Made by a program: the position numbers and the translations under genes | Part shown: positions 1,463 through 61,450 of the stretch, in pieces | Layout of the letters: each line of letters opens with the position of its first letter | How positions within the stretch are numbered: the stretch's first letter is position 1 | Notes under the pieces: model-generated | The model's input: only the letters and a program-made list of their open reading frames with translations | The model's database searches: none | Told to the model about the DNA's origin: nothing | Source: Pavona decussata | Taxonomy: Eukaryota | Assembly (NCBI GenBank): GCA_977016875.1 | Contig: CDRNST010000114.1 | Span: 372,001-436,000 of the forward strand | DNA length: 64,000 nucleotides | Direction: 5' to 3'

Positions 1463-1872
1463 TTACAATCGATTCATTACCATATCAAAGAGTCTATCTC
1501 TCTTTTCGGCCAGATTTAGAATCCTGGCTTGACGAATCTGCAAACTTTGCATTAAATCCACGTCTTCTTGCGTTCCGCTTGGGTTGTGTAAAGGAGGACT
1601 TATAAAGTTTTCCGCACTTTGCTCGTTCTGAATTGTTTCTAGAGAAAGCCTGAAAAGTTCTTGATCGTTCTCGTTATCTTCCAAGGGAAAGTCATTGAAT
1701 CTATGGTTTTCGAGATCTCGCATTTCCCGCGTGAAGGTTTCGTGCACTGAGGAAACTTGTGAGGATACAGGTAGGTTTTCTTCCATTTCAACATCATCAC
1801 CAACGTTGTTTTCATTGAAGTTAGAACTGGCTGCGTTATAAATCTTATTCAACCTATCCTCTGCACTGCAAC
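1463..1872 (-). CDS. Gene A, last coding exon (uncharacterised ~1076-aa low-complexity protein)
   Basis: Acceptor AAACTTACAG| before 1872; phase-1 join G|GT continues into CSAEDRLNK...MVMNRL-stop. Confidence 0.85.
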
Positions 1873-1949
1873 CTGTAAGTTTTAAAAACACGAGTAAATT
1901 GATTAGCACTTAATAATCCACACTGACCTGTTAGGGGTTATTTCCATAT

Positions 1950-2004
1950 CCCTTCGTCACGAATGGTTCGCTCTGACGAAGGGCTAACGCTCGAAACGTC
2001 AGCT
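1950..2004 (+). ncRNA. Minimal type I hammerhead-ribozyme motif inside a Penelope-like-derived repeat (intron of gene A, antisense to it)
   Basis: GCT-CTGACGA(1973-1979)-A-GGGC taac GCTC-GAAA(1993-1996)-CG-TC(2000)-AGC: both catalytic core boxes, stem II, minimal stem III and a 3-bp stem I. Confidence 0.65.
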
Positions 2005-2114
2005 GTTGATATAACCAAGCATTCGTTTCCCCTCCCAAGTTAATAAATGGATTGGTTACAACATTCAAAAGCCGGAATGTTTCCGCTGAGGCGCTTACTG
2101 AATCTAATGCTTAC

Positions 2115-3266
2115 CTCTCTCGTCATCCTGGAGGATCTTGCTGTGTTCGACTCCACCAACTCCATCTTCCAACCCATCGACCAAAGACGGTTTGGGTGGT
2201 TCATTGTTCTCGATATTCCCTTCATTAATAACTTGAGTTGTGACTGTACTACTAGGTCGTGACACATAATTTATCTCATCATGCCCCAAGCTGTTCCCTT
2301 CTTTATCGCCTTTATTTTGTACTAAAGCCGGCTCTTGAGTTGCCTCTACACTGCCATAATCTGACACGCTAATGTTACTTTCATAACCATTCATTGAAAG
2401 GTCACATTTTTTTGTTGCATTTGTCTTCTCTAGTTCCACGGCATTGTCTTGTTTGTTCAATTCGTTTGTGCCAATCTTGTCCATTTCATACTTAGCGCGC
2501 AAATCGGATAATTCCTTTCCTGTCACATTTTCCTCGAGTGTCACGCAATTCTTAACCTCGTTTTTATGATTTGGTGCCACACTTCTTATAGGTTCGTCTT
2601 GCGTGACACCCTGAGTGTTATGGCTGACGTCTTGAAAACTAAAAGAATTGGAGCCACTCTTTTCCATTTCATCCTTTACTGGCAAGAAAGATATTTTCTC
2701 AGGCAATACGTTTAAGTCATTAACGGTGTGCTTTTCATTTAGCACCAAACTTTCTGCTGCTGTAACTTGCGTGACACTTCGAGCGACGTGCGTGATATCT
2801 AGTGCACCAGAAGAAATCGTTTTGATCTTGTGCATAACTTCCTTATCTGATAACGACAATCGTTTCATTTTCGTAGACGTGGGGCTTTGATTTCTTTGAA
2901 ACTCCTTTTCGCCAACGTTGGACGACGAGAACGATCTCTTTCTGCAAGTCCCAGGTGGAGAGTCCAGTCCAATTCCTGCTGGTAAACTTACAATGGGGTC
3001 TTTCAGAATACCTTCCGAATTTAGCAGAGACAAACTTGCACGTTCATGTCGCTTGTTGTTGTTGTTGTTGTTTGCCATGCTAGTGTCATCATCGTTATCA
3101 TTAGAAACTTCTATAGATTTTGTTTCTTTCATTTCAATGTGTCCTGTGTCTTTGTGAGGGGGTGGGGTGGCTTGACACGGAGTGATAAGTTCATCACAAT
3201 GTTCCCGACCTTGACTATTTGTTTCTTTGCCTTCCTTTGGAATCTCAGTTGAAGTTAGAACGTCAC
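2115..3266 (-). CDS. Gene A, coding exon 4
   Basis: Acceptor TTCCTTCTGCAG| before 3266, donor AGAG|GTAAGC after 2115; 1152 nt, phase 1-1, open throughout and in frame with ORF 2104..3132; includes a poly-Asn microsatellite. Confidence 0.9.
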
Positions 3267-3457
3267 CTGCAGAAGGAATAAATTTTAGGATGAACGAGTG
3301 AAAGATACAATATATTTTTGAATTTACATAAGGAATGAAAAAATACCTAGGTTTTCTTTTCCCGGGGTCACTCCAACCCAGCCATAAACTTACAAATTTA
3401 TACTGGACAGTTTGGGCTCCAATAATGCAAGAGGTAACACAATTTTCTTCAACTTAC

Positions 3458-4103
3458 GTTTTGCGCCCCCGCCCTCTTTGTTTCCAAGCCCAGTTTCATT
3501 TTGGGTCACATGACCAGCTTGTGACTCAGCATCAGTGATATCCAATGCTTGTGACTCGGAGGCTGCGCGATGAATCACTTCCCTTAATTCTTCACCGGAA
3601 GTTGCTTTTCCTCTCTCATCAGATCTGTCTGTAGTTATTTCCTGTTTCTTAGCTGTGTCCGTTTTCTCGTTTCGCATTCCTTTGGTGAGAGCCTTAACTC
3701 GCTTCTGCAAACCAAGAATGGCTTTCAGCATTTGTTTCTTTCTTTGCTCATCCTCCGCCCGATGCAGTCTACTTTTTATGTACCGTATCCTGGCAATTAA
3801 GTCCCTGACATCGTTTTGCTTACTTCCGGCTTCTACTTTTGCAGGAGCATTTCCTGTGCTTGTTGTGGACTGAAGAACAGTACTGGTAGATTGATATGCA
3901 ATTGTGGTGGGCAGACAGCTAGTGCTCTGGCTGGCACCCTGTTTCGGAGCAGAAATAAACAAGGGTGATTCCTCAGAGCTTTCCACGTTGTTGTTTTGGA
4001 TAGCCGTTTCAGCCGGATCATCTTCGATAACAATTGGAGCATCGTCTCTTGTCTTCTTGGAACTTGGCGGCTGGTAACACATTTTTCCTGTACCTTCACC
4101 TCC
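3458..4103 (-). CDS. Gene A, coding exon 3 (carries the shared helical module and a SIM-like PIVIEDD)
   Basis: Acceptor ATGTATCTAG| before 4103 (phase 0), donor AAAC|GTAAGT after 3458 (phase 1); 646 nt, in frame with ORF 3390..4082. Confidence 0.9.
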
Positions 4104-4527
4104 CTAGATACATGAATACACAATAAACCACATGTTTGCTGCAATTCACTCGGCGCTTTCTCTTCTAAGTTTCAGGGATTCACAGTTTCGTTTTCAGTCA
4201 GTTTTTCTCGTTACTTTAAAACTTGCAAAAAGAGAGGTGGAATCGATCTCCTCGGTTAAAGTCTTCAAACTCTTTTATGTTCAAACACATGTGAACTTAA
4301 GAAATTTGATTTAGGGCCTATTCTTTCTCTGAAAAATTACTTTTCTTCTCTATGCCGTAAGAGCAATTTAAAGTGTCAGTTAAGGCACGCTGTTTAAAAC
4401 GTGTTGCAGCTTTGACCAAAGAACAGAAATATCCCTATGAGAGTGCCCCTTTGGGTACCTCCTTTTACTACTGCATACTGAGCATACGTTCTGCGCATCT
4501 CGGGATGGTCCTAGAAGCTCTGATTTC

Positions 4528-4887
4528 TTAAGGATGGTGCCTACCTATTCAAAGTATTTTTTTTGTGCACGCGCGCGCACGGTTTAGACTCTGCAGGAAG
4601 GGAAGATCTTAGCAACGATCCAGTTGAAATCCAAAAAGAAAATTGGGGATAGCCATGCATTTTTCAGAGATAATTACTGAAGTAACAATTATTCTGAAAC
4701 GACTTAAACTACATTACAATGCATGGAATGTTTTTTCCAAATTGAAGCCTAATTATCTTAGAAAAATTCGTGGCTATCCCCAATCTTCTTCTTGGATTCC
4801 AATAGCCCTTGTTAAGAACTACTTTTCAGTCGCACATAATAATAAACTGTGCAAAAATACCTCTGTATTAGGAAGCATCATCCTTAA
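4528..4887. mobile_element. MITE with TTAA-bounded ends (Kolobok-like)
   Basis: TTAAGGATGGTGC at left end, GCATCATCCTTAA at right end. Confidence 0.6.
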
Positions 4888-5031
4888 ACACATCAATTGA
4901 CCGCCACCCTCAAGAAGGCGTAAAAATATTTCATCGCGTAGGTACATGAACAGGGTAGTTCAAAAACAAGAATTATTTTAATTTAAAGAAAATTATCGGG
5001 CAATTAACTCGTAGTAAACATAAAATCTCAC

Positions 5032-6032
5032 CGGGTTATCTTGTTGTTCCAGTTCAACACCAGTTGAGCTTGATAAAATATTTTTTCTTGGTGGTCCTGC
5101 TGTAATGTTATCAGATGTACCATGAGTGTTTTCACCCTCAGAGCATTGTCCACTGGGTTGGTTGTTAGGAACATTACTGGAGCTAGCGACTAAATTTTCC
5201 TTCTGTTGGTTGACAAAACAGGAGATGTCGCCTCCTTCCAACTGAGTCGTCTGCTTTGTTTCCTCAGGCATACAGAATGAAACATAAAAAGTATTGATTC
5301 TTGTTGGTACTTTTCCCACAATTTGACGAATTGTTGCCTGTTCTCTGTAAGTATTTTTAATACTTCCGTTGTTCAGAACTTGACCCGACGCCGAGTGTTT
5401 TTCATTCCCCTGGTCATGAAGCAAGCCAAGTGACCCATGAATTGGTTGTGCCCTCAGATTCGTATTCTGATCCAGAATTCTTAAAGAAGTCGCATTAATA
5501 TTTTCATCTAAATGTCCATTTTTACTATCGTAGTTAAGCAAAACACGACCACCGACTTCAGTTTCCTGTAGTTTGGGTCGTTTAAACATGCTAGGTTCGT
5601 GAATGGGGCATGCGCATGGCTGAACCAAGGATGGCATCTGTTGCAGCACAGTTGAATTTGCCACGCAGCCGTTAGCGCTTTTCGCCAATGTCTCCGTCTG
5701 GCCACTAGCACATATGGGCGCTTTAATCTTTGGTGTACCAGTTACAAGGTCTTTATCTTCTTTCGGAGGGTGATCCCATCTGAAAACGGAGTCAATATCT
5801 TGGAGTTCTTGGTTAGTAGCGGAATTCGTTCCGTTGCCAATTCCCTGCGATAGTCCATTGCTAGGTACATTATTTGCTAACACGGCGTTGCCCCTCTGAT
5901 CAAAAGTCACTGGCCAGCAAACAGAGACAAGTTTTGGATAATTTTTGTAATCGAACGCTACTCCTGAAGGAAACACCAACGTAGTGGGTTGAAGGCTAGG
6001 TTCCCCAAGGGCACTTGGGATGATAGGAAACA
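5032..6032 (-). CDS. Gene A, coding exon 2
   Basis: Acceptor TCTCTCTCCTCAG| before 6032 (phase 1), donor CCG|GTGAGA after 5032 (phase 0, matching the next exon); 1001 nt open frame. Confidence 0.9.
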
Positions 6033-6068
6033 CTGAGGAGAGAGATGTAAAATAATATCAATGACCTG

Positions 6069-6307
6069 GGCTGGGTTGTTCGAAAGCCGATTAACGCTAA
6101 TCAACGATTAAAAGTTAACCGAGGTTTTCGTCTCGCTCATTAAAAATGATTTTAAAGGCTCCTTTTAAGCTAATGGCATATAAAAATCTAAGGTAAAACT
6201 TAGGGACAAAAATCTTTTGGACGAATCCTTATGGATAAGTAAATATACTCGAATCAAAGTTCACGTTAACCCAGGATTAGCTTAATCGGTCTTTGAACAA
6301 CTGGGCT
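6069..6307. mobile_element. PIF/Harbinger-like MITE, copy 1
   Basis: TIRs GGCTGGGTTGTTCGAAAG / CTTTGAACAACTGGGCT with CTG on both flanks (3-bp CWG TSD); homologous to 7835-8026 and 51165-51310. Confidence 0.8.
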
Positions 6308-6311
6308 CTGG

Positions 6312-6312
<1 letters not shown>

Positions 6313-6375
<63 letters not shown>
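6313..6375. repeat. (GAT)21 microsatellite, probably the 3' tail of the adjacent LINE
   Basis: Direct count of a perfect trinucleotide run, located at the 3' end of the minus-strand LINE fragment. Confidence 0.95.
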
Positions 6376-6660
6376 AAACTGGTTTTCAGGGGGTCCTCTG
6401 AAATAAAAAAAGAGAAGCAAGTAACAAAATATCCCCTAAGATAAGATATAAAAATAGGTAACAATAAAAATTAGGATCTACTATAAATATATATATAAAC
6501 TAACCTAAAACAAGTCACATAAAAATTTATTGAGATTCCTTTTAAAAATCGCGTTAGGCATAGGTCTTTTTAATTCGTTAGGCAGGAAGGCCCAATCGTT
6601 CAAAGCTCTAAAGTATGTAGTATGTCTTCCCAATTCCGTTCGTGGCTTGGGAAGTCTTGG
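6313..6660 (-). mobile_element. 5'-truncated L2/CR1-clade LINE 3' end
   Basis: Minus strand 6660-6505 translates PRLPKPRTELGRHTTYFRALNDWAFLPNELKRPMPNAIFKRNL..stop, resembling an L2/CR1 ORF2 C-terminus; followed by an AT-rich UTR and (ATC)n tail. Confidence 0.7.
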
Positions 6661-7236
6661 TAGAAATTAGAAAACCATGTAGTCTTTTTGAGATAAGTCG
6701 GACTAACCAAAGTTCTCTAATGGTCGACTTAGACAATACAACTTTTTCGCATGCGACCTTTCTACGTCATACCTAAGGAAAGACTAACGGCAAAAGTTGG
6801 CGGTAGGTTTAATTTAGGTCAGTAGCACATGCATATCGTAAAAATTTAGTGCAACAAAGACGTACTCTCAGGTTCAGTCTTATACCACCTACCTCTGGTT
6901 GCACGTTGAGAGCCGCTTAATGGCAAGGTTAGCTGGTTTGCGCCAGTTGAGATATTAAAAACAGTGGGTATCTCCTTCAGTGTTTCATCCGCCAAAGAAG
7001 ATGCTGACGCCATCTATAGCCAAAATCCCTAGAAAAAGAAAATCCTCTCTTTATAGAAATCAGAAAAGCATGAACGTTTTTATGTGACACGAATAATCAG
7101 ACAAGAGACCGAACAACAATGATAGATACCCTAGGGAATCCTCACATCGCACTAGTTTAAATTTTTCGTCGCGACACAATAATATTTTTCCCATAATTGT
7201 AGTTTCTTCTCTAGAGTTTACTCCTTTCTGACTTAT

Positions 7237-7467: not shown

Positions 7468-7508
7468 TGACTGTATATAGAAACATTGCACGAAAATTTG
7501 GTTTTGAT

Positions 7509-8026: not shown

Positions 8027-9718
8027 TAGAACACGAAGCAAATACATATAAGCGGCGAAAAGCGTGGGAAAACGCCAGCGAGCAAGTCATTGGTTCTCAG
8101 TGGCTGAAGAATTGCCAACCAATCATAGGGCGCAATAGAGCTAACCAAAGCGTCGTTGATTCCCAAAGCATTTTGTTTTTTTTTTTTTTTTAATAGTAAG
8201 TGGTGCGAAGAATGTGTGAAACAAATGTTTTTAACAACAAAACAACAAAACGGTAGAGATCAAGTTTGTGCACAAGTGTGTGGTGTGATCGAAAGTCTGA
8301 CTGTGTTAGCGCGCTTCCACATTGGCCGAGCGAGAAAGTCAACGTCTCCGCGTAGCCGTACGGTATTAGATGCGAGGAAACCAATGAATAAAGTACCAAA
8401 CTGTAAAGTATGAATTTTGATACTATTTGGGCATTGAATGACGACATTTTCCACTTAAATTACAAAATGGAGATTAGTTGTGACAAATTTCATTTCGGTT
8501 TAAGAATATCAAGTAAAGTTTCGAGCAGTCTCCATCTACTAAGCGAGCAACACAAGCTTCTTGTTCATGTATTAGCAAAATAAGCTGCGATTCATTTAAT
8601 ACATTAGCCTGCAATGGAGTTTTCATGAAATTCTAATGTTTGAACCCTTCCGAGAACAACACTCCACATCATCGAGACAATAACATAATTTGATGTAAAG
8701 AGCAATTTCGGAACGTTTTAACGAGACCACAGCCATTTTGACTTTCAGTATATTTCATTTAAAATGCAAAGCGACCGCTGTCTCGAGAACTTAACTTTGA
8801 GTGAATAAATTAATAACTGTCTGAGTTGCAATTGTAAGGCAGACGGCTTACCCAGACAACCTCTATTCATATAGTTTCATTTCTTTCTAAAAACAGCTTG
8901 AAAGGTTAAATTATCAGTGGAAAGCTTCTTCACGATCACAGAAAGGTAGATCAGAAAACGTTTTACACATCAGAAGCGTTGAATAATAGCCGCTGATATA
9001 TCATAAGTTTGTAGGAAGGAAAGATAATGGCTTGTGCATTTACGTCAGTCTAAGTACAAACTGTTTGCGTTTTATAATTAAAATTTTGTAATCCAAAGGA
9101 AACCCACGAAAATTTGAAAACGCGCTCTAAAAAGAGCGAAAATGAAACAGTATAGAAAATAATTATTGAATTAATCTGATGAGAAATAGAACCAAAATGA
9201 AAGGAAAAGTATAGTTTTTAATTTGCTTTGCTGAAAAATTGCATGAGAAAAATTCATGTGAAACTGTCAAGATGTTATGACATAAAATTATGAAATATAC
9301 ATTCTATCATGTGGAAACTGGCATGGCGGATGAAAATTAAACTAGCGAACGAACGGAGGCGACTAATCCTCGCGCAATATATGAATTTTTCAAAAGAACC
9401 ATTTTCCACCACTAAAAGTGTGGGCCACCTTCAAAAGGGTTGATAAAAAATTACCTTTCGACAAGACTAGCTAAAGAAAAAGTCCTCATGAATTTTCTTT
9501 TATAAGCGCGAAAATCCAAGGTTTTTTGTCTACACCGGTGATAACAAATATAACACTGAAATAAAAAAAACACCAATCATTTTGTAACTTTTTGGTATGT
9601 AACAGTTAATTCCACGAAGAGACATTTTACAGCCGTTCGACATTACCCCAAATACTGTTCAAGTTTTACCACCAATGATCTGTTGAAAAAAAATAGTTTT
9701 GTGATAAAATAAACTCAC

Positions 9719-9860
9719 CTTCACTGGAATTCTCCTTCTTCAATGTATTATATCCACTTCGCTTGATTTTAACGGAATAAACAAACAAGCTCTTTTCATT
9801 TCGCGATCCGTTACAAATTTACCGTTAACATCTGAAACGTATGACGCACGAGCACACAAC
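9719..9860 (-). other. Candidate non-coding first exon of gene A
   Basis: Consensus donor AAG|GTGAGT after 9719 next to a CpG-richer stretch (9840-9920); no ATG-initiated frame reaches the donor; 5' boundary is a guess. Confidence 0.35.
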
Positions 9861-9977
9861 ACAATAGAAACATGCGCGCGCATTTGACACGTGCGCTCGT
9901 TCCCAGAGCCCGTGCGTCTGAGAAGAAAAATGGTGCAGTAGAGTACTAGGCATATTCACGGTAGCATCAGTTTAGAC

Positions 9978-11840: not shown

Positions 11841-11990
11841 NNNNNNNNNNNNNNNNNNNNNNNNNNNNNNNNNNNNNNNNNNNNNNNNNNNNNNNNNNNN
11901 NNNNNNNNNNNNNNNNNNNNNNNNNNNNNNNNNNNNNNNNNNNNNNNNNNNNNNNNNNNNNNNNNNNNNNNNNNNNNNNNNNNNNNNNNN
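11841..11990. other. Assembly gap (150 N)
   Basis: Run of N characters. Confidence 1.
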
Positions 11991-12128: not shown

Positions 12129-13064
12129 TCAAAACAACTTCAGTAGCTTATTTCGGATATCCTTCTTCAAAAATAAACATATAACTGGGTTAACAGCGGG
12201 ATTTACAAAAGTCAGTAAAGACGTAGCGAGCAGAGCTTCTTGGGAAACTGAGCACATTTTGAAATGCTTGCAAGAAGTCAGCACTATGGAGAAAACCCAG
12301 CAAAACACAAAGAAAAATACCAAGGTGCCAATAACTCCCAAGGATTTCTCCGCTCTTAAGTTTGAGCGATGGCCGCTGTCGTTTGAAGCCTGTGTCATCA
12401 GGTTGAGATGAGTCCTTTGGAGTTGAATTTGTCTGGAGTGCCTTCGGCGTATGAAAAAAATACGACCATGAACAAGTACCATTATTGCGCAAGGAACGAG
12501 CTCAAAGACAACAAGTTGTACGGCGCGAAATACTTTGTTTATTTCCACTATGGCGGAGCTAGCTTCGGCAAACATCCAGCAGAAAGGGACTGCTGAAATG
12601 ATAGCTGGAACTACCCAGGCTAAAATAATCCATAGTTTAACTCTTGGGACGACCATGAGGTGATATTTCATTGGAAATTCTACTGCAGCCAAGCGATCAA
12701 GGCTCATCACACAAACGTTAGAGATGGAGGCGTATATGACGAGATCCGAGAGAATTAAGCGAACGTTGTCGTCACAGGATAGCCAAAGGTTGCAAATCAT
12801 GCAAGACGGGATAACATAAACTCCTGACAAGACGTTAGACACCGCAAGCGACAGGATAAACCAGTTGGCCGAGTGATGGAGGCTGGGTGATTTGATGATG
12901 ACAAACGCAAGGAGTCCGTTAGCTAAAAGGATCAGAAGTTCTATCACCCCAGAGGTAATCCAAAACCACAGAATCGTTACCTTTTCCGAGGACGTTTCTG
13001 GCTGAAGAGTTCCGTTTGTGGGATTTGAATCTTTGTCTAGTTCAAAAGAACGGAACTGATCCAT
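12129..13064 (-). CDS. Intronless class A (rhodopsin-like) GPCR, orphan amine/adenosine-receptor-like, 311 aa
   Basis: Seven hydrophobic segments; N-glycosylation sequon NGT; TM1 LANG, TM2 FILSLAVSN, TM3 SLDRLAAVEFPMKY, TM4 AWVVP, TM5 ELVP, TM6 FVFCW, TM7 NPAVNPVIC, helix-8 KKDIR. Confidence 0.93.
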   Translation of the reverse strand: MDQFRSFELDKDSNPTNGTLQPETSSEKVTILWFWITSGVIELLILLANGLLAFVIIKSPSLHHSANWFILSLAVSNVLSGVYVIPSCMICNLWLSCDDNVRLILSDLVIYASISNVCVMSLDRLAAVEFPMKYHLMVVPRVKLWIILAWVVPAIISAVPFCWMFAEASSAIVEINKVFRAVQLVVFELVPCAIMVLVHGRIFFIRRRHSRQIQLQRTHLNLMTQASNDSGHRSNLRAEKSLGVIGTLVFFFVFCWVFSIVLTSCKHFKMCSVSQEALLATSLLTFVNPAVNPVICLFLKKDIRNKLLKLF

Positions 13065-14159
13065 TGGAAAGCTGGTGTCAAAGAGTTCACTTCTTTGGTT
13101 GTTTTGTACAAGATCTGCAATGAGCGTATGTTTTGGTCCGTCCGATGAAAGTAAATAAGTCTATTACACGTATTAAATTGTCCCCGAATTCCGGCTGAAA
13201 TCTTGAACCGTTAAATTTGCGTAAAAGACCACATATTAAAAACACTTAGAAGTGTTCAAGATGCTTCTCTAGAGAAAAGGATCTAATTCTCCAAAGTATT
13301 TTGAGATTTATCCTTCAAGAGCCAAACCTTATAACTTCAAATGAAACTTAATGCGATGTATATTTTTTTCCAACGTGACAATTAAAAATCGTGGTTTTAC
13401 AAATAAACTGCCTCTAAGGTTCATATTGTATTTGCTTTGACATATCAGTCTTGGTGACACTTAGATGAGAGATGAACAAAATGCATAAAAAGGTTGGTCG
13501 GTGTGTTAATACGGTTGAGATGTCTTTATATTTGAAAATGTCAGTGATGAAACATTACATATACCCTCAGTTTATAAGGACAAACTGCTAAAATACACAA
13601 GAAAGGCTTGTTTTATCGAGAATGCTTTCAGACGGCATTATTAGTCCAAGAATCAACCATCACCAAGCACATATATAATTTTCATCGCTCTTTCAGACAG
13701 TCCAAAAGGCCTTGACGTGTTTACTTTTCAATCTTAAAATCACTAAAACAGGAAATTGGTCAGACGTACATACATATCACATAGTATACATAGTATGTTA
13801 TACCTTGTCTTTATACATTTATGCATGTTTTAATTAACGGTCACTCCGCCCGGTACAGTTTCCTGATAGCGAAGGTTATTAAAAAATCCCAATGGTATAT
13901 ACAGATGGGCAGCAAGACAAAGAAAACTAACTTTTCGGCTAAAAGCTTTTTGAACCAATAAATACAATATTTGCATAAGAGAAAAGCCTTGGTAAACACA
14001 CATTTCAGGTGGTTTTAACGTCGAATAAAGATATCGAGTAAAGCGGGGCAGAAAAGAAACAACTTTTAAAGGCGCGTACGCTGCTTCACAAAGCAATTTT
14101 TCTGCAACTTGATACTCACATTGTAGTGCAAACTGCAGAAAACTTGTTACACAGGGCAT

Positions 14160-18359: not shown

Positions 18360-21300
18360 TTAAGCGCATTCTTTTGTCATTATGGCTGCTCGCGATTTGA
18401 CGCCCTTTCTCACGATCTTCTTCTTTCGTCCTGGTTTGTTACACTTGACTTTCTCTGCATTCTCTTCTTTTGATTCTTCCTTTTCCTTATCTTCGTCAAT
18501 GACAATGTCAGCCTTTTCTCCAGTTTCCTTTTCTGTTTTCCTTAGTCGTCTAATGAATGTAGCTTCCAGACTGAAGAGAAGTTTCTTTTTCCAAGGGATT
18601 GCCTCTTTCTTTATCCTTTCGCGAGTATATAAAATTTTTTTGCTCAGTTCTGACACAGTAAGTTTTCTCCGCGGTGACTGCTGTTTCCTCTCAGCTTCGT
18701 CAACCTCGACACACTCCATTGGGCCCTTTACTTCGATAGTTAATTCTTTTGACGGCGAAGAAAGATACTTCAATAGCGTCCATTTTTTAACATTGCTATA
18801 TAAGTTGGCTGCGTTTAAACTTTCCTGCTGTGAACTATAATCCTTCTCTGCACGATACGTGACATCTTGAACATCTTTAACCGTATCCACTTGCGACCGA
18901 TTAACAAGGTTGTTTGTATGGCTTGCTTTAACGATCTTGCGTGGTTTGCCTGGCTGAAAATTACTATCTTCATTAACGTTCACAGTCAGCTTTTGCAGCA
19001 GGTCACTCCAGTACTTCTTATCAGTGGCCGAGAAGAGGTTACTTTCCTTCAGGGCCTCATCTTCTGTCACAATGGAATGTACAGCCACAATTCTGGGCAG
19101 AGCATTGTGATCGATGGCATAACCACCGCATCCAGAGTCTATATTGTCCCAATCACTTCCAGAGGGAAGGGGTGGTAGATTACGTGAGTCAGAACAAATT
19201 TGCTGAACTTGCAATGTGTCTATCGCTTGGTCGCAGTCTCCAGAGGTAACGCGTGGTTCTATGGTATGAATAGGCGACGTGTTATTTTCACAATTGGGTG
19301 TGGGCAATTTGCGATTAGAGGAGTGATCCTCCTGTCCTTGGTACCTCATTAGTTCGCCCATTGGTTCTTGGTTATGTGGACATTGGACTACGGTCGTTTC
19401 ACTAGTTGAAAATCGCCTCTTTTGCTGTCTGTGGTGTTCGTCGCATGGTAGGTCTATTGGGATTTGATGACCTTCAAACCTTTCGGTGTCAGTTAACTTG
19501 GAGTGATAGTGGGTAGATGGCCTTTTCAGCTCCTCTTGAAATTTAACCCTTACGACATCAATGGGATCAAGAGAGACGTCCTTTTCATCGTTGAAATCAA
19601 ACCTGGGGCGATCGTTGGACCTGTTTTGGTCCTCAGATAACTTAACTCTGCGTTTCTGGAGTTCATTTAGACTGATAACACCACTGCTGTTAACGGAATC
19701 CTCGCGCGCCGTCAGGGAACTCTTTCCATTTTGATCCTGACGCAGCATCTTGACTTTTGGATTGACGGGGTTGGCTACCGGCGACGATTTCCTACATTGC
19801 TCACGAGATACGTCATTATTAAAACTCGATGTAGCATTTTGACTTGGATCTGAATACCTAGGCGTATGAATTCTATCACATGACTGCTGTCTTAACAAGA
19901 GCTGATTTTGTCGGTTGGAAGGCATACCACTACCGTGTTTTCCACTTCCACTGCTCAGATTTGACCTTTGTAGGGAGGTTGGTCTTGCAAAGGTCATGGT
20001 GGTTCGTGTTTGATCCATTTCAATGGTTTGTTCACTTACATGCCGTTCACAAGGTAATTTGTTTAAGTTTGACTTCGTGCTATCATTTGGCATGGATTGG
20101 AAAGATGCCCTTACATCCACTTGTGTAGCGCTTTTACTACTGACGCCATGAGAGGAAACAGTGGACATTCCATCTCCATTTTTTTGGACGTTGTGGCTGG
20201 TTTGATCTCCATCACAAACTACAAAATCACTCTGCTGATACCGCCTCTTTGTGGGGCTGCAATTCGGAACAGCATCATACTCGAATTCATTTAGACTGAT
20301 AACACCACTGCTGTTAAAGGAATCTTTGCGCGCCGTCAGGGAACTCTTTCCATTTTGATCCTGACGTAGCGTCTTGATGTTTGGATTGTCGGGGTTGGCT
20401 ACCGGTGACGATTTCCTACATTGCTCACGAGATAAGTCATTATTAAAACTCGATGTAGTATTTTGACTTGGATCTGAATACCTAGGCGTATGAATTCTAT
20501 CACATGACTGCTGTCTTGACAAGAGCTGATTTTGTCGGTTGGAAGGCATACCACTACCGCGTTTACTTCCACTGCTCACATTTGACTTTTGTAAGGAGGT
20601 TGGTCTTGCAAAGGTCATGGTGGTTCGTGTTTGATCCATTTCAATGGTTTGTTCCCTTACATGACGTTCATAAGGTAATCTGTTTAAGTTTGACTTCGTG
20701 CTATCATTTGGCATGGATTGGTAAGATGCCCTTACATCCGCTTGTGTAGCGCTTTTACTACTGACGCCATAAGAGGAAACAGAGGACATTTCATTTCCAT
20801 TCGTTTGGACGTTGTTGCTGGTTTGATCTCCATCACAAACTACAAAATCACTCTGCTGATACCGCCTCTTTGTGGGGCTGCAATTCGGAACAGCATTATA
20901 CTCTGCGAATTTGTTCTTGAAGCCTTGTTCACGAGGCTTTTCACTTTGCATCAGTTGAGTTTTGTAGGAGGAACCTTCTGGCTTGTGAAACTTATCAGTT
21001 GAAGCATGTGACTTTAAAGTGAGATTTCGAGTATCGTCGCATGATTTTGACCTACCCCTGTGAGCGTTTGTTTTTGATGGAGGATAGTACAGTAACTGAG
21101 GGTGAATCACATCATTCGGCATAGATGAAGAATGCTTAAGCTGCCTGTGCGGCTGGCGTTCGAATAATTCAGTGTGCCATTCTCCTTGTTCCAAGGATGA
21201 CATTGCTGGGTACTTCGCATTGTCATCATTGATTGCTGTCTTGTTGTCCGAGGAAACGCCACCTTTTTCTCTGCAATCTTTTGGTGAGGTGTTAAGAGTT

Positions 21301-22459
21301 TGTTGCCGAGTCAGGGTCATAGTCTGGCGTTTCTTGCCTTGAGGCGAATTTGGACCGCCTTGAGATACATCACCATCACAACAATTATCATTCCGTACCA
21401 TTGCACTGTCGTGTTGTAGTTTTGCAGAGAATGACAATCGACGCTTTTGATGCGAGTCTTCGTTCATGGCCATGCGATATCTGGTTTCTTCCAAAGGCGT
21501 CCAGTGGTGAGTTGATCTGGTACTGCATTCCATCTCAACATCCGGCTTGTTGGGTTGTTGAAACCAAGTATAGTCATCTTCACAACCTTTATGCCCGCCG
21601 TCACTTGAGGTTGATTCGTCATTCTGATTATTATTCAGAGGTGAAGTGTCACGCTTAGCATACTCACTGGGAGTGTTCTTCTTCTGCCGACCCTTTACTT
21701 TCCTATAAGTACCAACCTCAGCACTTGGTTCACTTTGAAAGCCACTCATCGGAAATTCTTCACGTCTGATGGAAGATTCGGCTACGAAAACGTTCGTCAG
21801 CCCTTCGTCCGACTTAGAAATCTCTCTAGTCGTGTCGGAATATTTCTTAAGACTTTTATCCGTTGTGCAAAATTTCGTTTCAGCCGGGTCTTCCAAATGA
21901 GGTGTTTTGTGCTTTTTATCGTCGTTTCCACTGTTTACCTCGCATTTTCGAATAAGCGGAGGTGGTGAAGCCAATGGTTTGCGTCGTGCTGTTCGTTTTT
22001 TCTGTGAGACCTTTGACGCTGCCTTCTCTCGAGAATTCTTTGTCATCGTCTTTAATTTGCCTCCGTCGATTCGTGGCCTCTTTGGGTAAGGGTAATGATC
22101 AACAGAATGGCAGATTTGGGTACAGCTATCATAAAAGGTCATGGGGCAAGTCGAAAAATTGTAATGAAACCTCTGCTGAAAATGAACAGTGTCTTTTGCT
22201 TCCATCGGCATATACGTTGGGCGTAGGACAGGCCAGTTACGGTTTTGTAAAGTACCGTGGACATTTGGATGATGAGGGGTGCCAGGTATTCCCGTATTTG
22301 GATACACAGACGGTAAATACGACGTAGATGAATGCGCAGGAGGAATGCTGAACGCCGATTTGACATTTTCATGTGGCGATGAATTGTATGTGGCTTGCCC
22401 CACAGTAGGTGCGGCTGCATACGGTGAACAATACATTCCTGGAACAGGCTGCTTTCCAC
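18360..22459 (-). CDS. Gene B, 4.1-kb terminal coding exon (uncharacterised Ser/Gln/Asn/Lys-rich protein, ~1407 aa in total)
   Basis: 1358-aa ORF extended to acceptor AATTCACAG| before 22459 (phase 1, GGKQPVPG-MYCSP...); basic NLS-like patches PKRPR, KKRTARRK, RKKK. Confidence 0.93.
19662..20903 (-). repeat. In-frame tandem duplication within gene B (period 624 bp, two copies of ~207 aa)
   Basis: 19662-20282 aligns to 20286-20903 with about 30 substitutions and one 3-bp indel by manual count. Confidence 0.97.
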
Positions 22460-25400
22460 CTGTGAATTACAGTAATGTGATGTTAAATTTTGGAACGGAT
22501 AATTATCTGTTCGAGGAATTTATGCTTAACAAAGTAGCTAGAGCGTGTTTATTAAATAATGCTTCCACAAATGGGAAGCTACATTGCTGCAGAAGCCTGA
22601 AATGTCAATGGTTTCCAAATGCTCCTCTTTTTGTGCAAACTCGACAGGCGTTGGAAAATCGGAAAAGATAAAAAAGATGCAGATATTAAACACGAAAGAG
22701 CTCATTTTCGGAATTTAACGTTGAATTTGATTTTGAATATTTAAGGTTTGGATGAGCAAGCACAAACCTATCTTGAGTGTATCCGGTGCTTATCAAACTG
22801 ACTCCGCGGGGAACAACGTCAAAATGGCCTACATGAGCACACATCCTACTAAACTCCTAAAGCTCAGTTTCTACGATATTCTTGCGATCGATACAATCAC
22901 TATATCACGATATTGTTGCTGTTGTCGCTGAAATTGCTACGATTGCTACAATTTAACACTTCACAAGCGTCTAGTGTGCGCATTATGAACCGTGTGTGTC
23001 CCCTCAACCTGAAATCGTGTCCTGTTTTAGTGACGACTATCACAGAAAGTTGTGGTATAAATTCTGGTGCCGGGGCAAAGGGAATTATTCCACCCACAAT
23101 CTAAACAAATAAGAAGAAAAACCTATTAAGCCTCACATTTTTGTTTATCTTGATACACAAAGAAGGTTGACACATTATTTCTGTTCAAGAAAATCATTTG
23201 GCTGCACAACACCATGTAATTATGGTCAATTTGTTTTTTAAATAAGGCTCAGACCTTTCGAAAAAAACACCCGAAAAGGCTGAACAGCAGAGAGACAAAA
23301 CGTTTACATCTACGTTCCGTTTTGCATCACATTACTTCCTGAGTCACTACCACGCAACTTGATTTCCACGCGTTCAGGCCCAGAAAATAATATGAAAATA
23401 ATTTGGTTTATGATAAAATTGTGTAAAAAAAGAAACCAAAACAGACAGTAAGGTCCCTTGTGCTGGGATCTTGTGGTTTGAATCATTGCTATGTGTCCTA
23501 ATTTTAACAAATTAGGTCGTTATATTGTTAATGATTAAAAAAAATTAGTTGGATAGTATAATTAGCTTAAATCTTATTTTTGTTTTGTATTTTTTATTTT
23601 TTTTTATCAAAGCCCAATCACTTTGGACTCTCCATAGAGACTGAGTTTGTCCATGACTCACACTTATTACTACTGACGATTGTTAAACAAACCATTCTTT
23701 ACAGGTCTTGAATAAAAAACATAACGTGAACAGAATTTCCGATTTAGCTTTCCGTGATGTAAAAGCAATTTCCACTTGAAAAATCAATTATCATGCAAAC
23801 AAGACATTTAAATTCATCAAAATAATGGGATGACGTACGTTTCTTTTTACTCTAAGAATAGCCTGCTTTAAAATAATATTCCCCTTGACAAACCACTTTT
23901 CTCTTGAAGTAGCTTTTTGAAATAAGAGCATCTAAAGTTAATTTCTAGCAACATTAAGTTTGAACGTTTTAAGTTTATGTTTAACCCATTACTTCTCCTG
24001 CATTTGTTAGTTGATATTTTTGCGTCAGTAAATGAAATCCTAAGCTGTGAGGAGTAAAACAAAAGTTATTGAGCGGTAATTTTCTTTGGTATTGTTTAAA
24101 GTTATACACGGTGTTTTTACCTTTGTAGTCCGTGAACGAAATCAAAAATTGTAATCATTGAAGTAAAATGTTGACCAGTCCTTCTCTATAGCGTGGTTTG
24201 TTTTTCGAGGTTTTCAACAGTGAATATTTGACTATTGAAACACTGTTAGGAGTGAAATAAAGGGATCACTTTAACACGTGACGCCCTCAAATGAAGCACT
24301 GCTAAACACAACTTACAACTTACAACTTCAACATCACTTTGCTATTAGTCACAGTGATTTGGCGAACTCCCACGCAACATGACACAGTTAGAGGTTCTAC
24401 CGTTGTACAACCTCCCAACAATTATCTAATACAAAGCACAGTCGCCATGTGAAAAGTTTTTAGACTTGGCTAGCGTTGCAGTCTTAGCCTCAGGCGAAAT
24501 GAAACGAATTCGGTGTCTCCCAAATCTGAAAAAATATGTGGTAAAGACTTTACGCGAACGACTTCATTCCCAAGTTTGTGGTCTTCTTCGATGGATAGCT
24601 ATGAAAATTGATATGCAAAAGAATAAATTGGTGTTCAGCGTTTTTTTCTTTTTCTTTTAATTCGCACTGTGATTCTGTTCCAGAATCGCTTGAGTTTTTC
24701 CGAATTTCCTTGTCAGATAGAAAGTCGAAAATAGGGTGTGAATTTATAACTGCGTGGTTGACTGTGAGTGTAATTCTATGCTGTGAAAGCGAACGACTAT
24801 TTGCGACTGTTAAAAATATGATATACAAAACAACGCTAAAAAAACTATTTACCGGGTATCCAAGGGGATGTGAATCCTACTGAACTCTGGTTTAGCGATG
24901 CTCTTAGTCCATTACTGTTTCTTTCTTGCATCATGTTGTCGCTAGCTCAATAAACCTCCAACGGTCCGTAACAACCTCAAAAAATGTATTTATGTTCCAT
25001 TATCTCGAAGTTTTTGTTCGTGCCGCTGTAAATTTGAACTTGAACCAAATCACAGCTGAACAAATAATTATAGCTCCAATTACTGAGTCGCAGCTGTTAC
25101 CATTCTCATAGGCCTATGGTGATTTCCTATCCGTATACCTTGTAAACGTGCTAAGCAATCAAGAATTGGCGGCAAGGACGATACACCTAGGAAGATTCCT
25201 TTTGACAGGTCAATAATGATCGTATTATCCGGCAGGTAGATAAATACCCTACATACATGTAAAGTTTTCCTTTACATAAGTAAAGAGTTGATGGATTACC
25301 TTCTTTCTCATAAATCTAGAATGTTCAAGAATGTTCCCTAGTTCTCTATTTATTTCTTGTGAACAAATGTCAAAGAAGTGCGACTGAACCACCACATGAA

Positions 25401-55829: not shown

Positions 55830-55872
55830 ATGCACTTGCGAACCACCCATTGTATTTTCAAACACAAATTAG
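55830..55872 (+). CDS. Possible upstream coding exon of gene C (MHLRTTHCIFKHKL-)
   Basis: ATG at 55830 and donor TAG|GTAAAC in phase 1, compatible with the 58413 acceptor; no other support. Confidence 0.25.
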
Positions 55873-56812: not shown

Positions 56813-57290
56813 ATACACCCGTAAGCGGACACCGTTGGCACCAGAAAAACTGTCCGCTTAAGAGAGGTGTCTGCTTATGAGATGTTGAAAATGTAGTGTT
56901 TGTATGTAGCTGAGAACATGACCAAGTGTCCGCTTAAGAGAGGTGTCCGCTTATGAGAGGTTGAAAATGTAGTGTTTGTATGTAGCTGAGAACATGACCA
57001 AGTGTCCGCTTAAGAGAGGTGTCCGCTTATGAGAGGTTAAAAATGTAGTGTTTGTATGTAGCTGAGAACATGACCAAGTGTCCGCTTAAGAGAGGTGTCC
57101 GCTTATAGGAGGTTAAAAATGTAGTGTTTGTATGTAGCTGAGAACATGACCAAGTGTCCGCTTAAGAGAGGTGTCTGCTTATGAGAGGTTGAAAATGTAG
57201 TGTTTGTATGTAGCTGAGAACATGACCAAGTGTCCGCTTTCGAGAGACGCCCGCCTACGGGAGGTGTCCGTCAGCGGAGGTTTGACTGTA
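56813..57290. mobile_element. pogo/Tigger-like MITE containing a 76-bp tandem array
   Basis: Right end GGAGGTTTGACTGTA (TA-terminated); left part TAAGCGGACACC is inverted relative to the GGTGTCCGCTTA sub-repeats; left terminus degenerate. Confidence 0.7.
56851..57239. repeat. Tandem array, 5 near-identical 76-bp units plus a partial unit
   Basis: Units start at 56851, 56927, 57003, 57079, 57155 and 57231. Confidence 0.97.
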
Positions 57291-57935
57291 GCTTTCACAT
57301 TCGTGCTGAATGTTGTCGAATTTTCACCTTGCGAGTTCCATGTAATGTGCAAAAAGAACGTGGCTGCGTGTGAACTTATCAAGGCATAAAACGCAATAGC
57401 AGAATAGAAAAATAACATTTTCTGCAAAACCCTAACGGTTATTTATCTGGATGTGAGAAACTTTGAAATTAAACTCGACTGTTTCATTGACCCTGTGAAC
57501 ATTCAACCGTATTCTAAGCGACTCATAGGCAAAAAGTTCTACGTTTTGTCACATTGTATTTCCAGTTGTCGAGCTTCTGAGCTAATCGGGACTGGCTTTT
57601 TACCCAAACATGGGATTATCAGTGCACTATATATCAATACGTTCGCATCTCAAGTTTGAACACATCCGACGAAAAATCACTTGCTAGAGATAGCTCCAGT
57701 AGTTTAACTTATCAATTCTGAAGTAAACATGTCAAATTTTACGCACATTCGGATTCTCTTGTAAAAAAAAAAGCAAAGGCAAGCACTCACATCTCACTCA
57801 ACGATGTAGCCGGAGTTTCCCAGCGATGATTGCTGTTGCGAATTTGATTTTTGCCTCAACAAGACGTCCAGCTACTGCTCCGTGTAAAACTTTAATGTGT
57901 TATCTTTGATCTTTGTATTTATTCGTTTATATTAT

Positions 57936-58373
57936 ACACGCTCATCCACCTCCAGAACGTTTTACGTTAAAAGCTCTAGATTAGAAATACAGTAGCTTTC
58001 TTTTTCTCGACTTGGTGTTAAGCTGTGGAATGAGATACCATTTCATATAACAGACCTGCCGAAGGAAACACTCAAAATGGTACTTCGCCAATTGCTTTTT
58101 GATGTCCTGGAAAAAGAAGATGACTTTCATTGAAATCCCTATATGATAATTAAAAATGTAGGACTAACTAAATAATTGTTCCATTTACTATTATTACTTT
58201 TATTCTGTGAACTAGTTTAAAAATACTTTAAATCTGTTACTACGCAGAGTTTTTGCATGTCTGTATTTGTAAGTTCCTGTTACTTTTCTCACGTGTTCGT
58301 GTATTCGTCTTGTCCCGCTTCGATTAGTTTTGTAACTACTTGCGGGACAAGCCATTTATTTGTTGTTGTTGTT
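57936..58373 (+). mobile_element. 5'-truncated L2-clade (Crack/Daphne-like) LINE 3' end
   Basis: Translates TRSSTSRTFYVKSSRLEIQ*LSFSRLGVKLWNEIP...LFDVLEKEDD; 3' stem-loop CTTGTCCCGC (58309-58318) / GCGGGACAAG (58342-58351); (TTG)n tail. Confidence 0.75.
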
Positions 58374-58432
58374 TTATTCTTTTCTTTATTCCTTTGTTTT
58401 TCTTAATTGCAGGACAAAAACCACGAGTAGCG

Positions 58433-58532
58433 ATGCGCCTTTCTTCTAAATACTCCACAGTAGGCCTAGCATGCGAGTCGTCGCCATTGAACGACATTTC
58501 TTCACCTACGACAGATACCCGGCAGAATCGTG
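58433..58532 (+). CDS. Gene C, short coding exon (exon spans 58413-58532; MRLSSKYSTVGLACESSP...)
   Basis: Long polypyrimidine tract and TTGCAG| before 58413, donor GTG|GTATGT after 58532; 120 nt, phase 1-1; peptide similar to the start of the next exon and of gene B's large exon. Confidence 0.75.
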
Positions 58533-58875
58533 GTATGTTACTGGTCTCACACTTCATGCACCCTTTATGTGTCTACCAATAGTTTTTCTCCGTTAAAACC
58601 TTTATGCCATAAGTGAAAGAATGAGTTTCATCTTCCAACTTTGCCTCTAAATATATCCCTCTATATATCACAGAAACCACCACCATCTCAAAAGACCTTT
58701 CCCATAAATTTTTATCAAACTCTCCACTATGCGGGCGTTGGCACGGTCTGAGGAAGAGTACCTTGCAGGTACTAGTCCCACGGACTGTTCACAGGAAGGA
58801 GCAAAAATAATCTTGAGGGGAAAGTCCCGGAGACTTGTCCCTTTAATTCAAACCAGTTTGATTTTGAGAATGATG

Positions 58876-59011
58876 TATTATTCAGTGGTGACACAGGCAT
58901 ACTCGGAATGCTTCTATCAGGAGTCGAACCTGAGACCTTCCGATTACTAGTTCGGATGCTCTACCGCTGAGCTACAGGAGACTCGTGGGAACTAGGGCCA
59001 TTAAACTAGGT
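58876..59011 (-). mobile_element. tRNA-derived SINE fragment (tRNA-Thr-like), nested in a GGGACAAGTC-type repeat (~58731-59395)
   Basis: Minus strand TAGCTCAGCGGTAGAGC (A box/D arm), TCCGA-actagtaa-TCGGA (8-nt loop), CAGGTTCGACTCCTG (B box/T arm); poor acceptor stem. Confidence 0.75.
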
Positions 59012-59705
59012 TTTGATTTTTTGGAATCAAGACCTCCCTGGCTATTTTTTTTTTTCCTTTTTTTTTTAACGAAAATCGACAGTTCACACGAATCGGCTAG
59101 TCTCTACAACGAGTGCCGTGGCCCTGTCCCCTCGAGTATGCCGACTTTAAACCCCAACTTTTCAGTTGAATAAAAATCGGCACACACGATGGTGTCCAAT
59201 CGTGTTAACTACCCATTTTCTTCAAAAAAACCTTTTCGCAGTGCCACTTGTCCCCGCTCGAATTGGGTTTAAATTGAAGGGGCAAGTCCCCCGGAATTAC
59301 CATGCTTGTCCCTTGGTGTACATGGGACAAGATTCTGCATGTTTATACTGCAGGGAACTTGTCCCAGGGACAAGTCACCTCTACGTGCCTACCTTAACAC
59401 GAAGAAAGTCTTGTAAAGAATCCTTCAGCATTAGTCACGCAAAATCATAAGAAATAGTATAATACTATTACAGTCAGTTTTAGACCACAAAACCCATGCT
59501 CTGTATTAGAAACTGAAATAAATTGGGTCCGTTTCGTGAAAACGTCCCTCAGTAAAATCTCCAAAGGTGGCCCAATGTGCCCTCAGAAGCTAATCTGTTG
59601 AATAAACCCGGAAAGTGTGTCCCTGCAAGGTTTACGGTAAATGTACTTTATGACGTATCCATTCTCAGTAACGCATCGCCGGTTTATACTTTTGCTATTA
59701 CTTAG

Positions 59706-61450
59706 ATCTGAAGCCTTCAGCCCTCAGTGGGACGGTGTGCCTCCCTTCACAACCTTCTACAGTGGGTCTGGCCTGTAAATCATCGCCATTTAGCGACCCA
59801 TGTGCACCACAACTGATCAAACGAACATCACAAGACCTGCGCTTGCTTCCAGTTTACAACCGCTACTACGCACACACATGCATTCCGCCGGGAAATACTT
59901 TGCCGTGTCCAGGCCAACAAGTCTTGCCACCGACTGAAGTCGTGAATGAGTACTGGACTAGGCAATCCAATTACGGTCATCTATGTGTGTGTTCGTATGA
60001 TGGAGGTTGTCAAGGAAACGTTCTAAGCTATTACACACTCATTTGCCACTGTGACCACCTTCACTCAAAGCGGTCACGGTTAGCGGGTCATCCAGTGTAT
60101 CACAAGGCACTCTATAGCCAAGAAAGCCAGCCCACAAGAAAACAACCCAGCCAACAAAACTCGAGTTCAATCCACTTTCCTCCGCCCCTTGAAGTGAGGC
60201 GTTCAGCGCACCATGGTACACTTGATGAAAGAGTTATTCAGCATTCCAGAAGAGCACCTTGTCAAGCAATTCCAAGGCTGCCTCGCCTCACAACGACGGA
60301 AGTAAGACAGCCTTTGTCTGAAAAAGCAAGCATTGATGACGCACTTGAAATTCGCGTCCAGGCACAACGTTACCAAGCCCTGAGGAATAACAATGAAGAT
60401 TACAAGAAACAGTGGAGACAAAGGGGAAGGAATCAGCCAAGATCTCCCGAACCAACCCATCCGCTGGTTCAAAAAGGTTTTGGAACGGCCGTGCGAAAAG
60501 AACAGATAACGGATCATGTTTTATACCGTAAGGACGTGTCCGCTCAACAGAAAGCCACGTCTAACAGAATTGAAAAGATAACCGATGAATACATTGATGA
60601 CAGGGTGACCCACTCAGGACAATCTATTTATTCATCATCACCTTCTAGTCAGGAAACAAGCAATGAGGGAACCTCCCGCCTTATTACACTCAACGAAGTT
60701 AACAAGAGTCCCCTACTATCACGTTCTTCTCAAAATAACATTACTGCAAATACAGTGTATCAAGAACATTACATTGAAGATGGCGACCACGGCGCATACT
60801 CTTTCGATCACAGCTGTCTTCCAAGAATCGTGGCCGTGCAAACATTACTGCAAGATAATGAGGAAAATACCCGTACAAACGATATGCACGCAGACAGAGA
60901 GCTGAACTCAGCTGAAAAGATACGGGGTGATAATTTGTTGAATGGTTTCTCATCAGGCGAAGAAGATGAACAATTGTTAGAACAAAACTTCGAAAATTCG
61001 CCAGAAAGGTTCCAAGTTCAGTCCATACAAACTTGCACCCATCCAGCTCTTCATCAACCAGTCGCACAAGTGACTAAAACAGAATCAGCTTTGGTGAAAG
61101 GCTCGTGCGAGAAACAAGATCATACTCAAAATAAAAATACTCCGAAATGGGGATGTGCACAAGCCCCAGCCCTTGCAAAACAGATATGGTCATTTAACGA
61201 TCTTCTGCCAACAAACGAACTAAGTACTAGCGCTGAGGAAACGCACCAAAGTCGAAACGACGAGGCCCTTTTGAAGTTACGCGACAAAATTCAGGTTGTC
61301 GATGAGAGAATTCAAAGAGAAGTGATCCCCCATAAAAAGGCGACTCTCCTCTGGGTCAAGAAGGAACTCATCACACAACTAAGGGAACTGAATGCCATAG
61401 AGAGTGAAGTTGACTTTATCAAGAGGAAGATTAAAATAGAGGAACCGTGA
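59706..61450 (+). CDS. Gene C, large terminal coding exon (uncharacterised ~614-aa protein, probable paralogue of gene B)
   Basis: Acceptor TATTACTTAG| before 59706 (phase 1), in frame with the 571-aa ORF; shares LPRIVAV and the C-terminal ERIxxExIPxKK module with gene B. Confidence 0.92.

Follow-up and report, generated by a model that had tools for sequence, protein, structure and literature searches.

A 64,000-nucleotide stretch of the coral Pavona decussata (contig CDRNST010000114.1, positions 372,001 to 436,000; the whole stretch is referred to here as the window) carries three genes, A, B and C, which appear to be members of one unnamed protein family that is confined to Hexacorallia and clustered at this locus. 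We put the probability of this reading at about 0.7. The long stop-to-stop frames of the window fall into three sets, one for each gene: gene A on the minus strand (1463-7013, ~1109 codons), gene B on the minus strand (18360-22459) and gene C on the plus strand (58433-61450, 614 codons in two predicted exons). The exon models are predictions that draw on the sequence and on what orthologues conserve. Every search took single exons as queries, and total lengths were obtained by coordinate arithmetic. A first-pass annotation had proposed an old, clustered gene family from short motifs, numbered 1 to 6, and all 12 of the peptides that it quoted were recovered in the genes, on the strands and in the order given. 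Its interpretation is supported and now extends beyond the window; the observation behind it was confirmed in part, in full for B and C, whereas only one of the three pairings proposed for A survives and a better one exists.

The relationship is clearest for B and C, which, judged from their sequences, are with high confidence paralogues of one family. BLASTP of the two large exons gave an expect value (E) of 3e-7 over the C-terminal 237 residues. Comparison of the C- and B-orthologue profiles with hhalign gave a C-terminal match of 249 columns (probability 98.9%, E 2.5e-17) and an N-terminal match of 111 columns (probability 96.4%, E 1.1e-9). All six motifs are shared by B and C, as first described, and are conserved within each orthologue group; motif 5 is complete in both proteins and the columns of the helix module (motif 6) are invariant. 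At the DNA level A, B and C show no similarity, again as first described, with nothing at E≤0.01 in blastn at word size 7.

In gene B (minus strand) the N-terminal motif region, comprising PTVGQATYNSSP, a Cys/His element followed by KRPR, and SPPPLIRK, occupies 21945-22409, motif 5 (YAIDHNALPRIVAVHSI) lies at 19071-19121 and the helix-break-helix module (..SELSKKILYTRERIKKEAIPWKKKLLFSLEATFIRRLRK..), seen in AlphaFold and in the invariant columns, lies at 18522-18656. Gene C (plus strand) has two copies of motif 1, the first (YSTVGLACESSPLND) in its ATG exon and the second at 59711-59788, followed by Cys/His+KRSR (60032-60088), FPPPLEVRR (60176-60202), LITLNE (60680-60697), motif 5 (60797-60847) and the helix module (~61259-61390). 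The distant B orthologues P0013 and P0014 begin ..FSSTVGLACGSSPFND, which is near-identical to motif 1 of C. The PPPPL-type motif, present as SPPPLIRK in B and in the weak form FPPPLEVRR in C, is not universal in the family, and the [ST]L[NSD]E[LV].K element is restricted to B and C.

In order to find the extent of the family, a profile of the shared C-terminal module (an alignment of 244 positions) was run against 1.84 billion cluster representatives. It returned 81 representatives at E≤1e-3, 49 of them at E≤1e-10. Names were looked up for 30 of the 81, and every name found was that of an 'uncharacterized' or 'hypothetical' hexacoral protein; the more distant relatives of the window proteins that have names are likewise all from stony corals and sea anemones. 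Named members come from the corals Stylophora pistillata (LOC111330583 and LOC111330617), Pocillopora verrucosa (LOC131792615), Porites lutea, Porites evermanni and Oculina patagonica (hypothetical proteins in the last three), and from the sea anemones Nematostella vectensis (LOC5506439, A7SMN0), Actinia tenebrosa (LOC116303112) and Actinostola sp. NCBI gene models of family members exist in seven species. These relatives resemble the window genes in having the GYAFDH..LPKIVAVHS motif and the TRERI..E.I.WKKK hairpin in the same order, many with PPPPL[LIV]K as well; they differ in belonging to other subfamilies, namely types D, E and F and a clade of anemone proteins, and they carry no domain annotation. 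Since it is conserved from sea anemones to stony corals, the family appears to be ancient in origin.

Two modules were found in all members. The first is a motif of ~17 residues, G-[YF]-A-x-D-H-x-x-[LMF]-P-[KR]-[ILV]-V-[AG]-V-H-S (in a narrower form the residue between A and D is F, Y or I), with the consensus G-Y-A-F-D-H-x-x-L-P-K-I-V-A-V-H-S among 61 distinct copies listed, and it is kept across subfamilies. The second is a basic helix-break-helix of ~45 residues, ..L..KI..TRERI..E.I.WKKK.L..LE..L.K.LRK.E.ETG. The spacing between them varies from ~150 to ~1000 residues, and hence motif and helix are best regarded as separate modules on a string rather than as a single domain. A third widespread motif, seen in most subfamilies, is PPPPL[LIV]K. 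This, the N-terminal STVGLAC.SSPF, the Cys/His element followed by KRPR, and acidic-flanked hydrophobic stretches are limited to particular subfamilies. Members span 440 to 1550 residues and are mostly predicted to be disordered.

A tree built on 71 module columns (support given as bootstrap/SH-aLRT, the Shimodaira-Hasegawa-like approximate likelihood ratio test) separated B-type (95/94), C-type (97/97), D-type (100/100), E-type (94/88) and F-type (99/97) clades and a Nematostella and Actinostola pair (99/98), with no resolution in the deeper branching. The family as recognised by its modules is therefore at least five coral subfamilies together with the anemone genes, well beyond the three genes of the window. 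The B and C types are distinct, supported clades with several corals in each and sea anemones carry the family too, in agreement with the old duplication that had been suggested; as the members of the cluster fall into separate ancient subfamilies, the duplications themselves are old.

Affiliation of gene A

Gene A is likely to be a divergent member of the family that has kept the motif and the helix hairpin. The main ground for including it is a copy of motif 5, not the pairings of motifs 1 and 2 put forward earlier. Motif 5 had been listed for B and C only; that listing holds, but the copy in A, SGVAFDYKNYPKLVSV (5920-5967, minus strand), was overlooked and is A's best link to the family. 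It is conserved in six of six A orthologues and is a degenerate copy, GVAFDYKNYPKLVSV. A hidden Markov model (HMM) of the family motif scores it at 12.6 bits, a value reached by none of 20000 composition-matched shuffles (maximum 8.5), and across the six A orthologues the scores run from 7.6 to 14.2 bits. Furthermore, hhalign of the A-orthologue alignment against the family motif alignment gave a probability of 88% and E 2.9e-6. The motif closest to that of A is the one of the D subfamily (..GFAFDH.FFPKLVGV..). When A was compared with the full-length D subfamily, the top matches fell, in the correct order, on the motif (E 6e-4) and on the helix (E 8.6e-3), and 0 of 100 column shuffles reached the score of either. 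The matched segments are the most conserved blocks of A.

The 39-residue helical module, which had been claimed for all three genes, stands for B and C and is found only weakly for A. The A helix is the top match against the B, C and D-subfamily profiles, with E of 0.33, 0.52 and, at best, 0.0086, respectively. AlphaFold models A with a helix at 88-113, a break at H-R-A-E-D and a helix at 119-156 (predicted local distance difference test, pLDDT, 85-98), and B with a helix at 177-193, a break at E-A-I and a helix at 197-221 (pLDDT 80-94). In the gapless register first proposed the two breaks coincide, and in both proteins the second helix starts with a K-K pair.

A number of observations weigh against a single family that includes A. 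The extended profile-profile match holds for B and C, which detect each other, whereas A matches through the two short modules only: BLASTP of the A exons against B and C found nothing significant, and hhalign of the A exons against B-only or C-only orthologue profiles was not significant either (best E 0.085). The family helix HMM gives A only 0.2-3.9 bits, with a shuffle P of 0.036 for the window copy (0.001 for the copy in the related locus L006). The register preferred by hhalign differs by a two-residue gap from the gapless one, so that any exact alignment of the A helix is provisional. Gene A has neither a conserved PPPPL[LIV][KR] copy nor the Cys/His element, and continues for ~580 residues beyond the helix with conserved blocks of its own. 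The pairing of IPSALGEPSLQPTTL of A with motif 1 found no profile support, and its pairing with the Cys/His motif and nuclear-signal-like tail comes down to KRPKLQ, whose score of 2.3 bits is equalled or exceeded in 47 of 10000 shuffles. The 16-residue match could be a convergent docking motif. For gene B, the assignment of the 5' exon (see below) is tentative.

Several of these points would be expected if A were an unrelated neighbour of the paralogues B and C, its motif-5 look-alike and helix having arisen by convergence or chance. The non-significant profiles and the helix score near noise fit this alternative, and amphipathic basic helices, like signals of the KRPK type, are widespread. 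Gene A also differs in exon structure, having five or more coding exons instead of a single large one, and in its long extra C-terminal half. We nevertheless consider it unlikely, as it has to account for a motif score well clear of every shuffle, for two top D-subfamily matches that coincide with the defining modules and keep their order, for the fact that these segments are the ones most conserved in A, with a ratio of non-synonymous to synonymous substitution (omega) of 0.21 in the helix, and for the position of A within a cluster of family members. The tests return the ranking of the first-pass annotation, one family in which the B-C link is strong and that of A weaker.

Relation to described proteins and coding status

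No described family was recognised. Pfam was searched at E up to 1 with pieces of the three window genes and at E up to 0.1 with 10 diverse members, and no match came up to the cut-off; a profile HMM search of PDB with the family gave zero matches at E≤10. The gene identifiers of the named members appear in no paper, and nothing matching was found in the literature on taxonomically restricted disordered families in Hexacorallia. That the first-pass annotation recognised no named family agrees with these results.

The family might still be a highly diverged branch of a described metazoan family, for instance a SUMO- or chromatin-linked scaffold. The reach of HMMER is limited on modules of 17 to 45 residues, and known nuclear scaffolds do have architectures of this sort, with a basic cluster, a proline motif, acidic-flanked hydrophobic stretches and a terminal helix. 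In SUMO-binding nuclear scaffolds such as ATF7IP/MCAF1 a long disordered chain carries basic clusters, hydrophobic stretches with acidic flanks and a conserved helical segment that binds a partner, and paralogues vary widely in length. The likeness of the present family to them is one of architecture, by analogy, with no sequence relationship, and ATF7IP_BD and the fibronectin-type domain are absent from the Pfam scans of the family. Given the empty Pfam and PDB searches, the silence of the literature and the hexacoral origin of every named protein among the 81 representatives, we regard this alternative as quite improbable.

What is new here is a defined family with two modules; its kind, lineage-restricted, tandemly duplicated, disordered proteins with short motifs, is familiar. 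SCRiPs are reported as a taxonomically restricted family of coral cysteine-rich proteins (PMC2652719). Like the present family they are confined to one lineage, where they form several paralogues, and they lack homologues elsewhere. The present family differs from SCRiPs in being mostly disordered by prediction, with no Pfam domain, in carrying basic nuclear-type signals and in occurring also in sea anemones.

The substitution ratios mark all three as coding genes whose overall constraint is weak and concentrated in the modules. Omega (dN/dS, Nei-Gojobori) for B against the relative whose B protein is 91% identical (the 91% relative) was 0.52 for the whole, 0.32 for the C-terminal module and 0.58 for the linker, and against the L001 orthologue (51% identical over aligned codons) it was 0.39, 0.16 and 0.51, respectively. 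For C against L008 the whole gave 0.64. The A exons gave 0.48-0.80 against L007, with values of about 1-2 in the flanks of the helix. Such module-concentrated constraint fits linkers that diverge almost freely. In the AlphaFold models of A and B only the helices are confident, with pLDDT <60 elsewhere and predicted template modelling scores (pTM) of 0.28 and 0.30; these models and the difference between the B linker and module are in keeping with the earlier description of motifs on a string joined by fast linkers. The 17-residue motif, with a pLDDT of ~55, has no confident structure of its own.

That the long frames are non-functional, as decaying or drifting sequence or as derivatives of mobile elements, is very improbable: omega is high for coding sequence (0.39-0.80, some linkers near or above 1) and retroelement genes flank the loci in relatives, but open frames of 592 to 1368 codons are intact across species at only 40-50% amino-acid identity, the modules are under purifying selection (0.16-0.32), splice sites are conserved, NCBI models the genes in the seven species and Pfam scans show no transposon domains.

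Gene structures and organization of the locus

In each of A, B and C the first large exon is entered through a phase-1 intron, as the splice sites in the sequence bear out. For gene A the stop-to-stop pieces are 4996-6057, 3393-4103, 2107-3453 and 1466-1909 (minus strand), and splice sites together with orthologue conservation predict coding exons at 7013-6893, 6032-5032, 4103-3458, 3266-2115 and 1872-1466. The ATG exon (6893-7013) has 40 codons plus 1 nt and a phase-1 donor, and lies in a DNA block conserved with L006; its end, AGA G/gtaggt, joins to cag/TG at 6032. The first large exon (5032-6032), entered in phase 1, encodes the motif-5 copy and KRPKLQ (within 5569-5616). The exon at 3458-4103, labelled coding exon 4 and delimited by its splice sites, encodes PIVIEDD (4017-4037), an acidic-flanked hydrophobic stretch, and the helix hairpin (3636-3842). 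Coding exon 5 (2115-3266) is in phase 1 at both ends according to splice sites and orthologue alignment, and the last coding exon (1463-1872; acceptor cag/GT, phase 1) holds 136 codons and the TAA stop at 1463-1465. This last exon encodes a C-terminal helix-like block, ...SLQIRQARILNL..KRDRLF, that is conserved in L005, L006 and L007. The same three loci share by blastn a conserved non-coding block at 9692-9923 (minus strand), in which a donor GTGAGT is visible and which is a putative 5' exon or promoter of A.

Gene B has a stop-to-stop frame of 1368 codons (18363-22466, minus strand) and a single large exon (18360-22459; 1366 codons plus stop) with a phase-1 acceptor, cacag/GT, at 22459; its orthologues are P0007-P0014. 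Within it lies an in-frame tandem duplication (19656-20864) of two ~621-624 nt units that are 95% identical, each with VISLNE; the repeat units, 19656-20243 and 20280-20864, double a linker segment of ~208 residues. The B orthologue of the 91% relative aligns over only 1159 of the 1368 codons, apparently with one repeat copy, and the duplication looks recent for this reason. A candidate ATG exon for B (24853-24934, minus strand), proposed from a splice and open reading frame (ORF) scan, would have 27 codons plus 1 nt, a phase-1 donor and the peptide SSVGFTSP. The 91% relative (L011) carries the exon in identical form, and none was found in L001 or L002 when it was sought there. Upstream of B, a non-coding block at 25014-25289 (minus strand) is 70% identical over 284 nt to the DNA of a coral with only ~40% identity in the B protein. 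The block may be the promoter or a 5' exon of B, the candidate ATG exon (24934-24853) coming next.

Gene C has a stop-to-stop frame of 592 codons (59672-61447, plus strand). Its ATG exon (58433-58532) comprises 33 codons plus 1 nt with the copy of the STVGLAC.SSP motif noted above and a phase-1 donor, G/gtatgt; scanning for splice sites and ORFs brought it to light, and L008 has the same exon, although conservation there is uninformative since L008 is similar throughout. The large exon, including the stop codon, is 59706-61450, with a phase-1 acceptor, ttag/AT, at 59706. The two exons add up to the 614 codons given for C in the first-pass annotation. In the intron between them is a tRNA-like sequence (58909-58981, minus strand), which scores 46.3 bits with the Rfam tRNA model, ARAGORN reporting its anticodon as undetermined. 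Because similar copies lie at two other places in L008 (91% and 77% identity), it is probably a tRNA-derived repeat, resembling a short interspersed nuclear element, and not a working tRNA gene.

Both B (22062-22133) and C (60032-60088) carry the Cys/His element before the basic cluster, and its C...C-H..H spacing is kept across B- and C-type orthologues; this element could be a small zinc-binding knuckle.

Between A and B lies an intronless gene for a rhodopsin-type G-protein-coupled receptor (GPCR) at 12129-13064 on the minus strand (stop-to-stop frame 12132-13160; Pfam 7tm_1, E 4.5e-21, 75.9 bits against a cut-off of 30.5). It is not a family member and serves as a synteny marker. In at least four other coral assemblies it is kept downstream of B and upstream of A, its protein being 75-89% identical, and the order B, GPCR, A is conserved where the B proteins are only 40-44% identical. 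The cluster reaches past the window.

On one contig of the 91% relative there is a D-type gene at 1,009,258-1,013,238 (+) and gene B at ~1,059,547-1,062,615 (-), with an F-type gene ~0.9 Mb off. From this contig we would expect a D-type paralogue in Pavona ~30 kb beyond A, just past the left end of the window. B and C are divergently oriented and ~36 kb apart. The predicted order of the cluster is thus the D-type gene (outside the window), A, the unrelated GPCR, B, the ~36 kb spacer and C. Elsewhere, three further family members share contig 1556916, and two looked-up members of Stylophora have consecutive accessions on one scaffold. Two D-type paralogues, P0080 (~326-364) and P0081 (~288-326), share a block, ..DMFLVI..VF.V.R..H.GES.LIHTDS.GK.., that has no counterpart in A, B or C and could be a small folded domain.

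The window has a G+C content of 39% and a single run of N, an intergenic assembly gap at 11841-11990 (no strand) between the GPCR stop codon and the upstream block of gene A. The gap is 139 nt downstream of that stop codon (12129-12131) and ~1.9 kb upstream of the most upstream coral-conserved block of A (at or below 9923). Both its flanks are collinear, and in the same orientation, with L007, and the reading frames of A, B and C, examined at the gap, do not extend to it. The 10 longest ORFs of the window outside A, B, C and the GPCR, seven of them in the B-C spacer, gave no Pfam match. Mobile-element genes stand beside the orthologous loci of relatives (L001 991-5681, L007 17078-21122 and L009 19457-23617), encoding reverse transcriptase, integrase, a phage-integrase-like protein and a 797-residue ORF with a motif (GKT) like that of nucleoside triphosphatases; none of this kind was seen within the window itself. 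Two ORFs upstream of B in L001 were considered as C homologues and rejected as mobile-element-like genes.

Possible roles of the modules

The family appears to have grown by old tandem and inverted duplications, and its proteins are long, mostly disordered chains with a few short conserved modules. A tentative model, in which our confidence is low, is that they act as nuclear adaptors or scaffolds, directed to the nucleus by the KRPR/KRPKL basic clusters. In this model the 17-residue linear motif would be the docking site for a conserved folded partner, while the helix hairpin would serve either for dimerisation or for binding another partner or nucleic acid. What is brought together would then be diversified by duplication and by unconstrained evolution of the linkers. 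Docking of the motif to a folded partner appears its most likely role, because it has no confident structure of its own and yet is invariant from anemones to corals.

Two points tell against this model. Nuclear localisation would be read from nothing but the basic clusters. A SUMO-interaction role for motif 5 was rejected, as the pattern fits B and C but is broken in A and the D subfamily. Hydrophobic stretches with acidic flanks do resemble SUMO-interaction motifs in A (PIVIEDD), the D type and the anemone proteins; they are not universal, and strict acidic-flanked SUMO-type patterns occur in A and the D type only. Readings of the motif as calcineurin PxIxIT, PP1 RVxF or HP1 PxVxL were rejected as well, key positions of these patterns being a misfit.

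Many genes of corals and sea anemones are 'dark', and three unannotatable frames have here become a defined family. The motif and helix signature is usable to annotate dozens of 'uncharacterized' reef-coral genes, and the tractable model Nematostella carries a family member, LOC5506439. More generally, orthologue profiles can recover the homology of mostly disordered proteins where pairwise searches fail. A bolder and more doubtful proposal is that motif and hairpin are the two docking elements of an unrecognised, hexacoral-specific adaptor system, in which about six ancient paralogue lineages would link the same nuclear machine to different cargo through fast-evolving linkers. If true, the family would represent a lineage-specific regulatory layer of anthozoan cell biology, with LOC5506439 of Nematostella as the point of entry.

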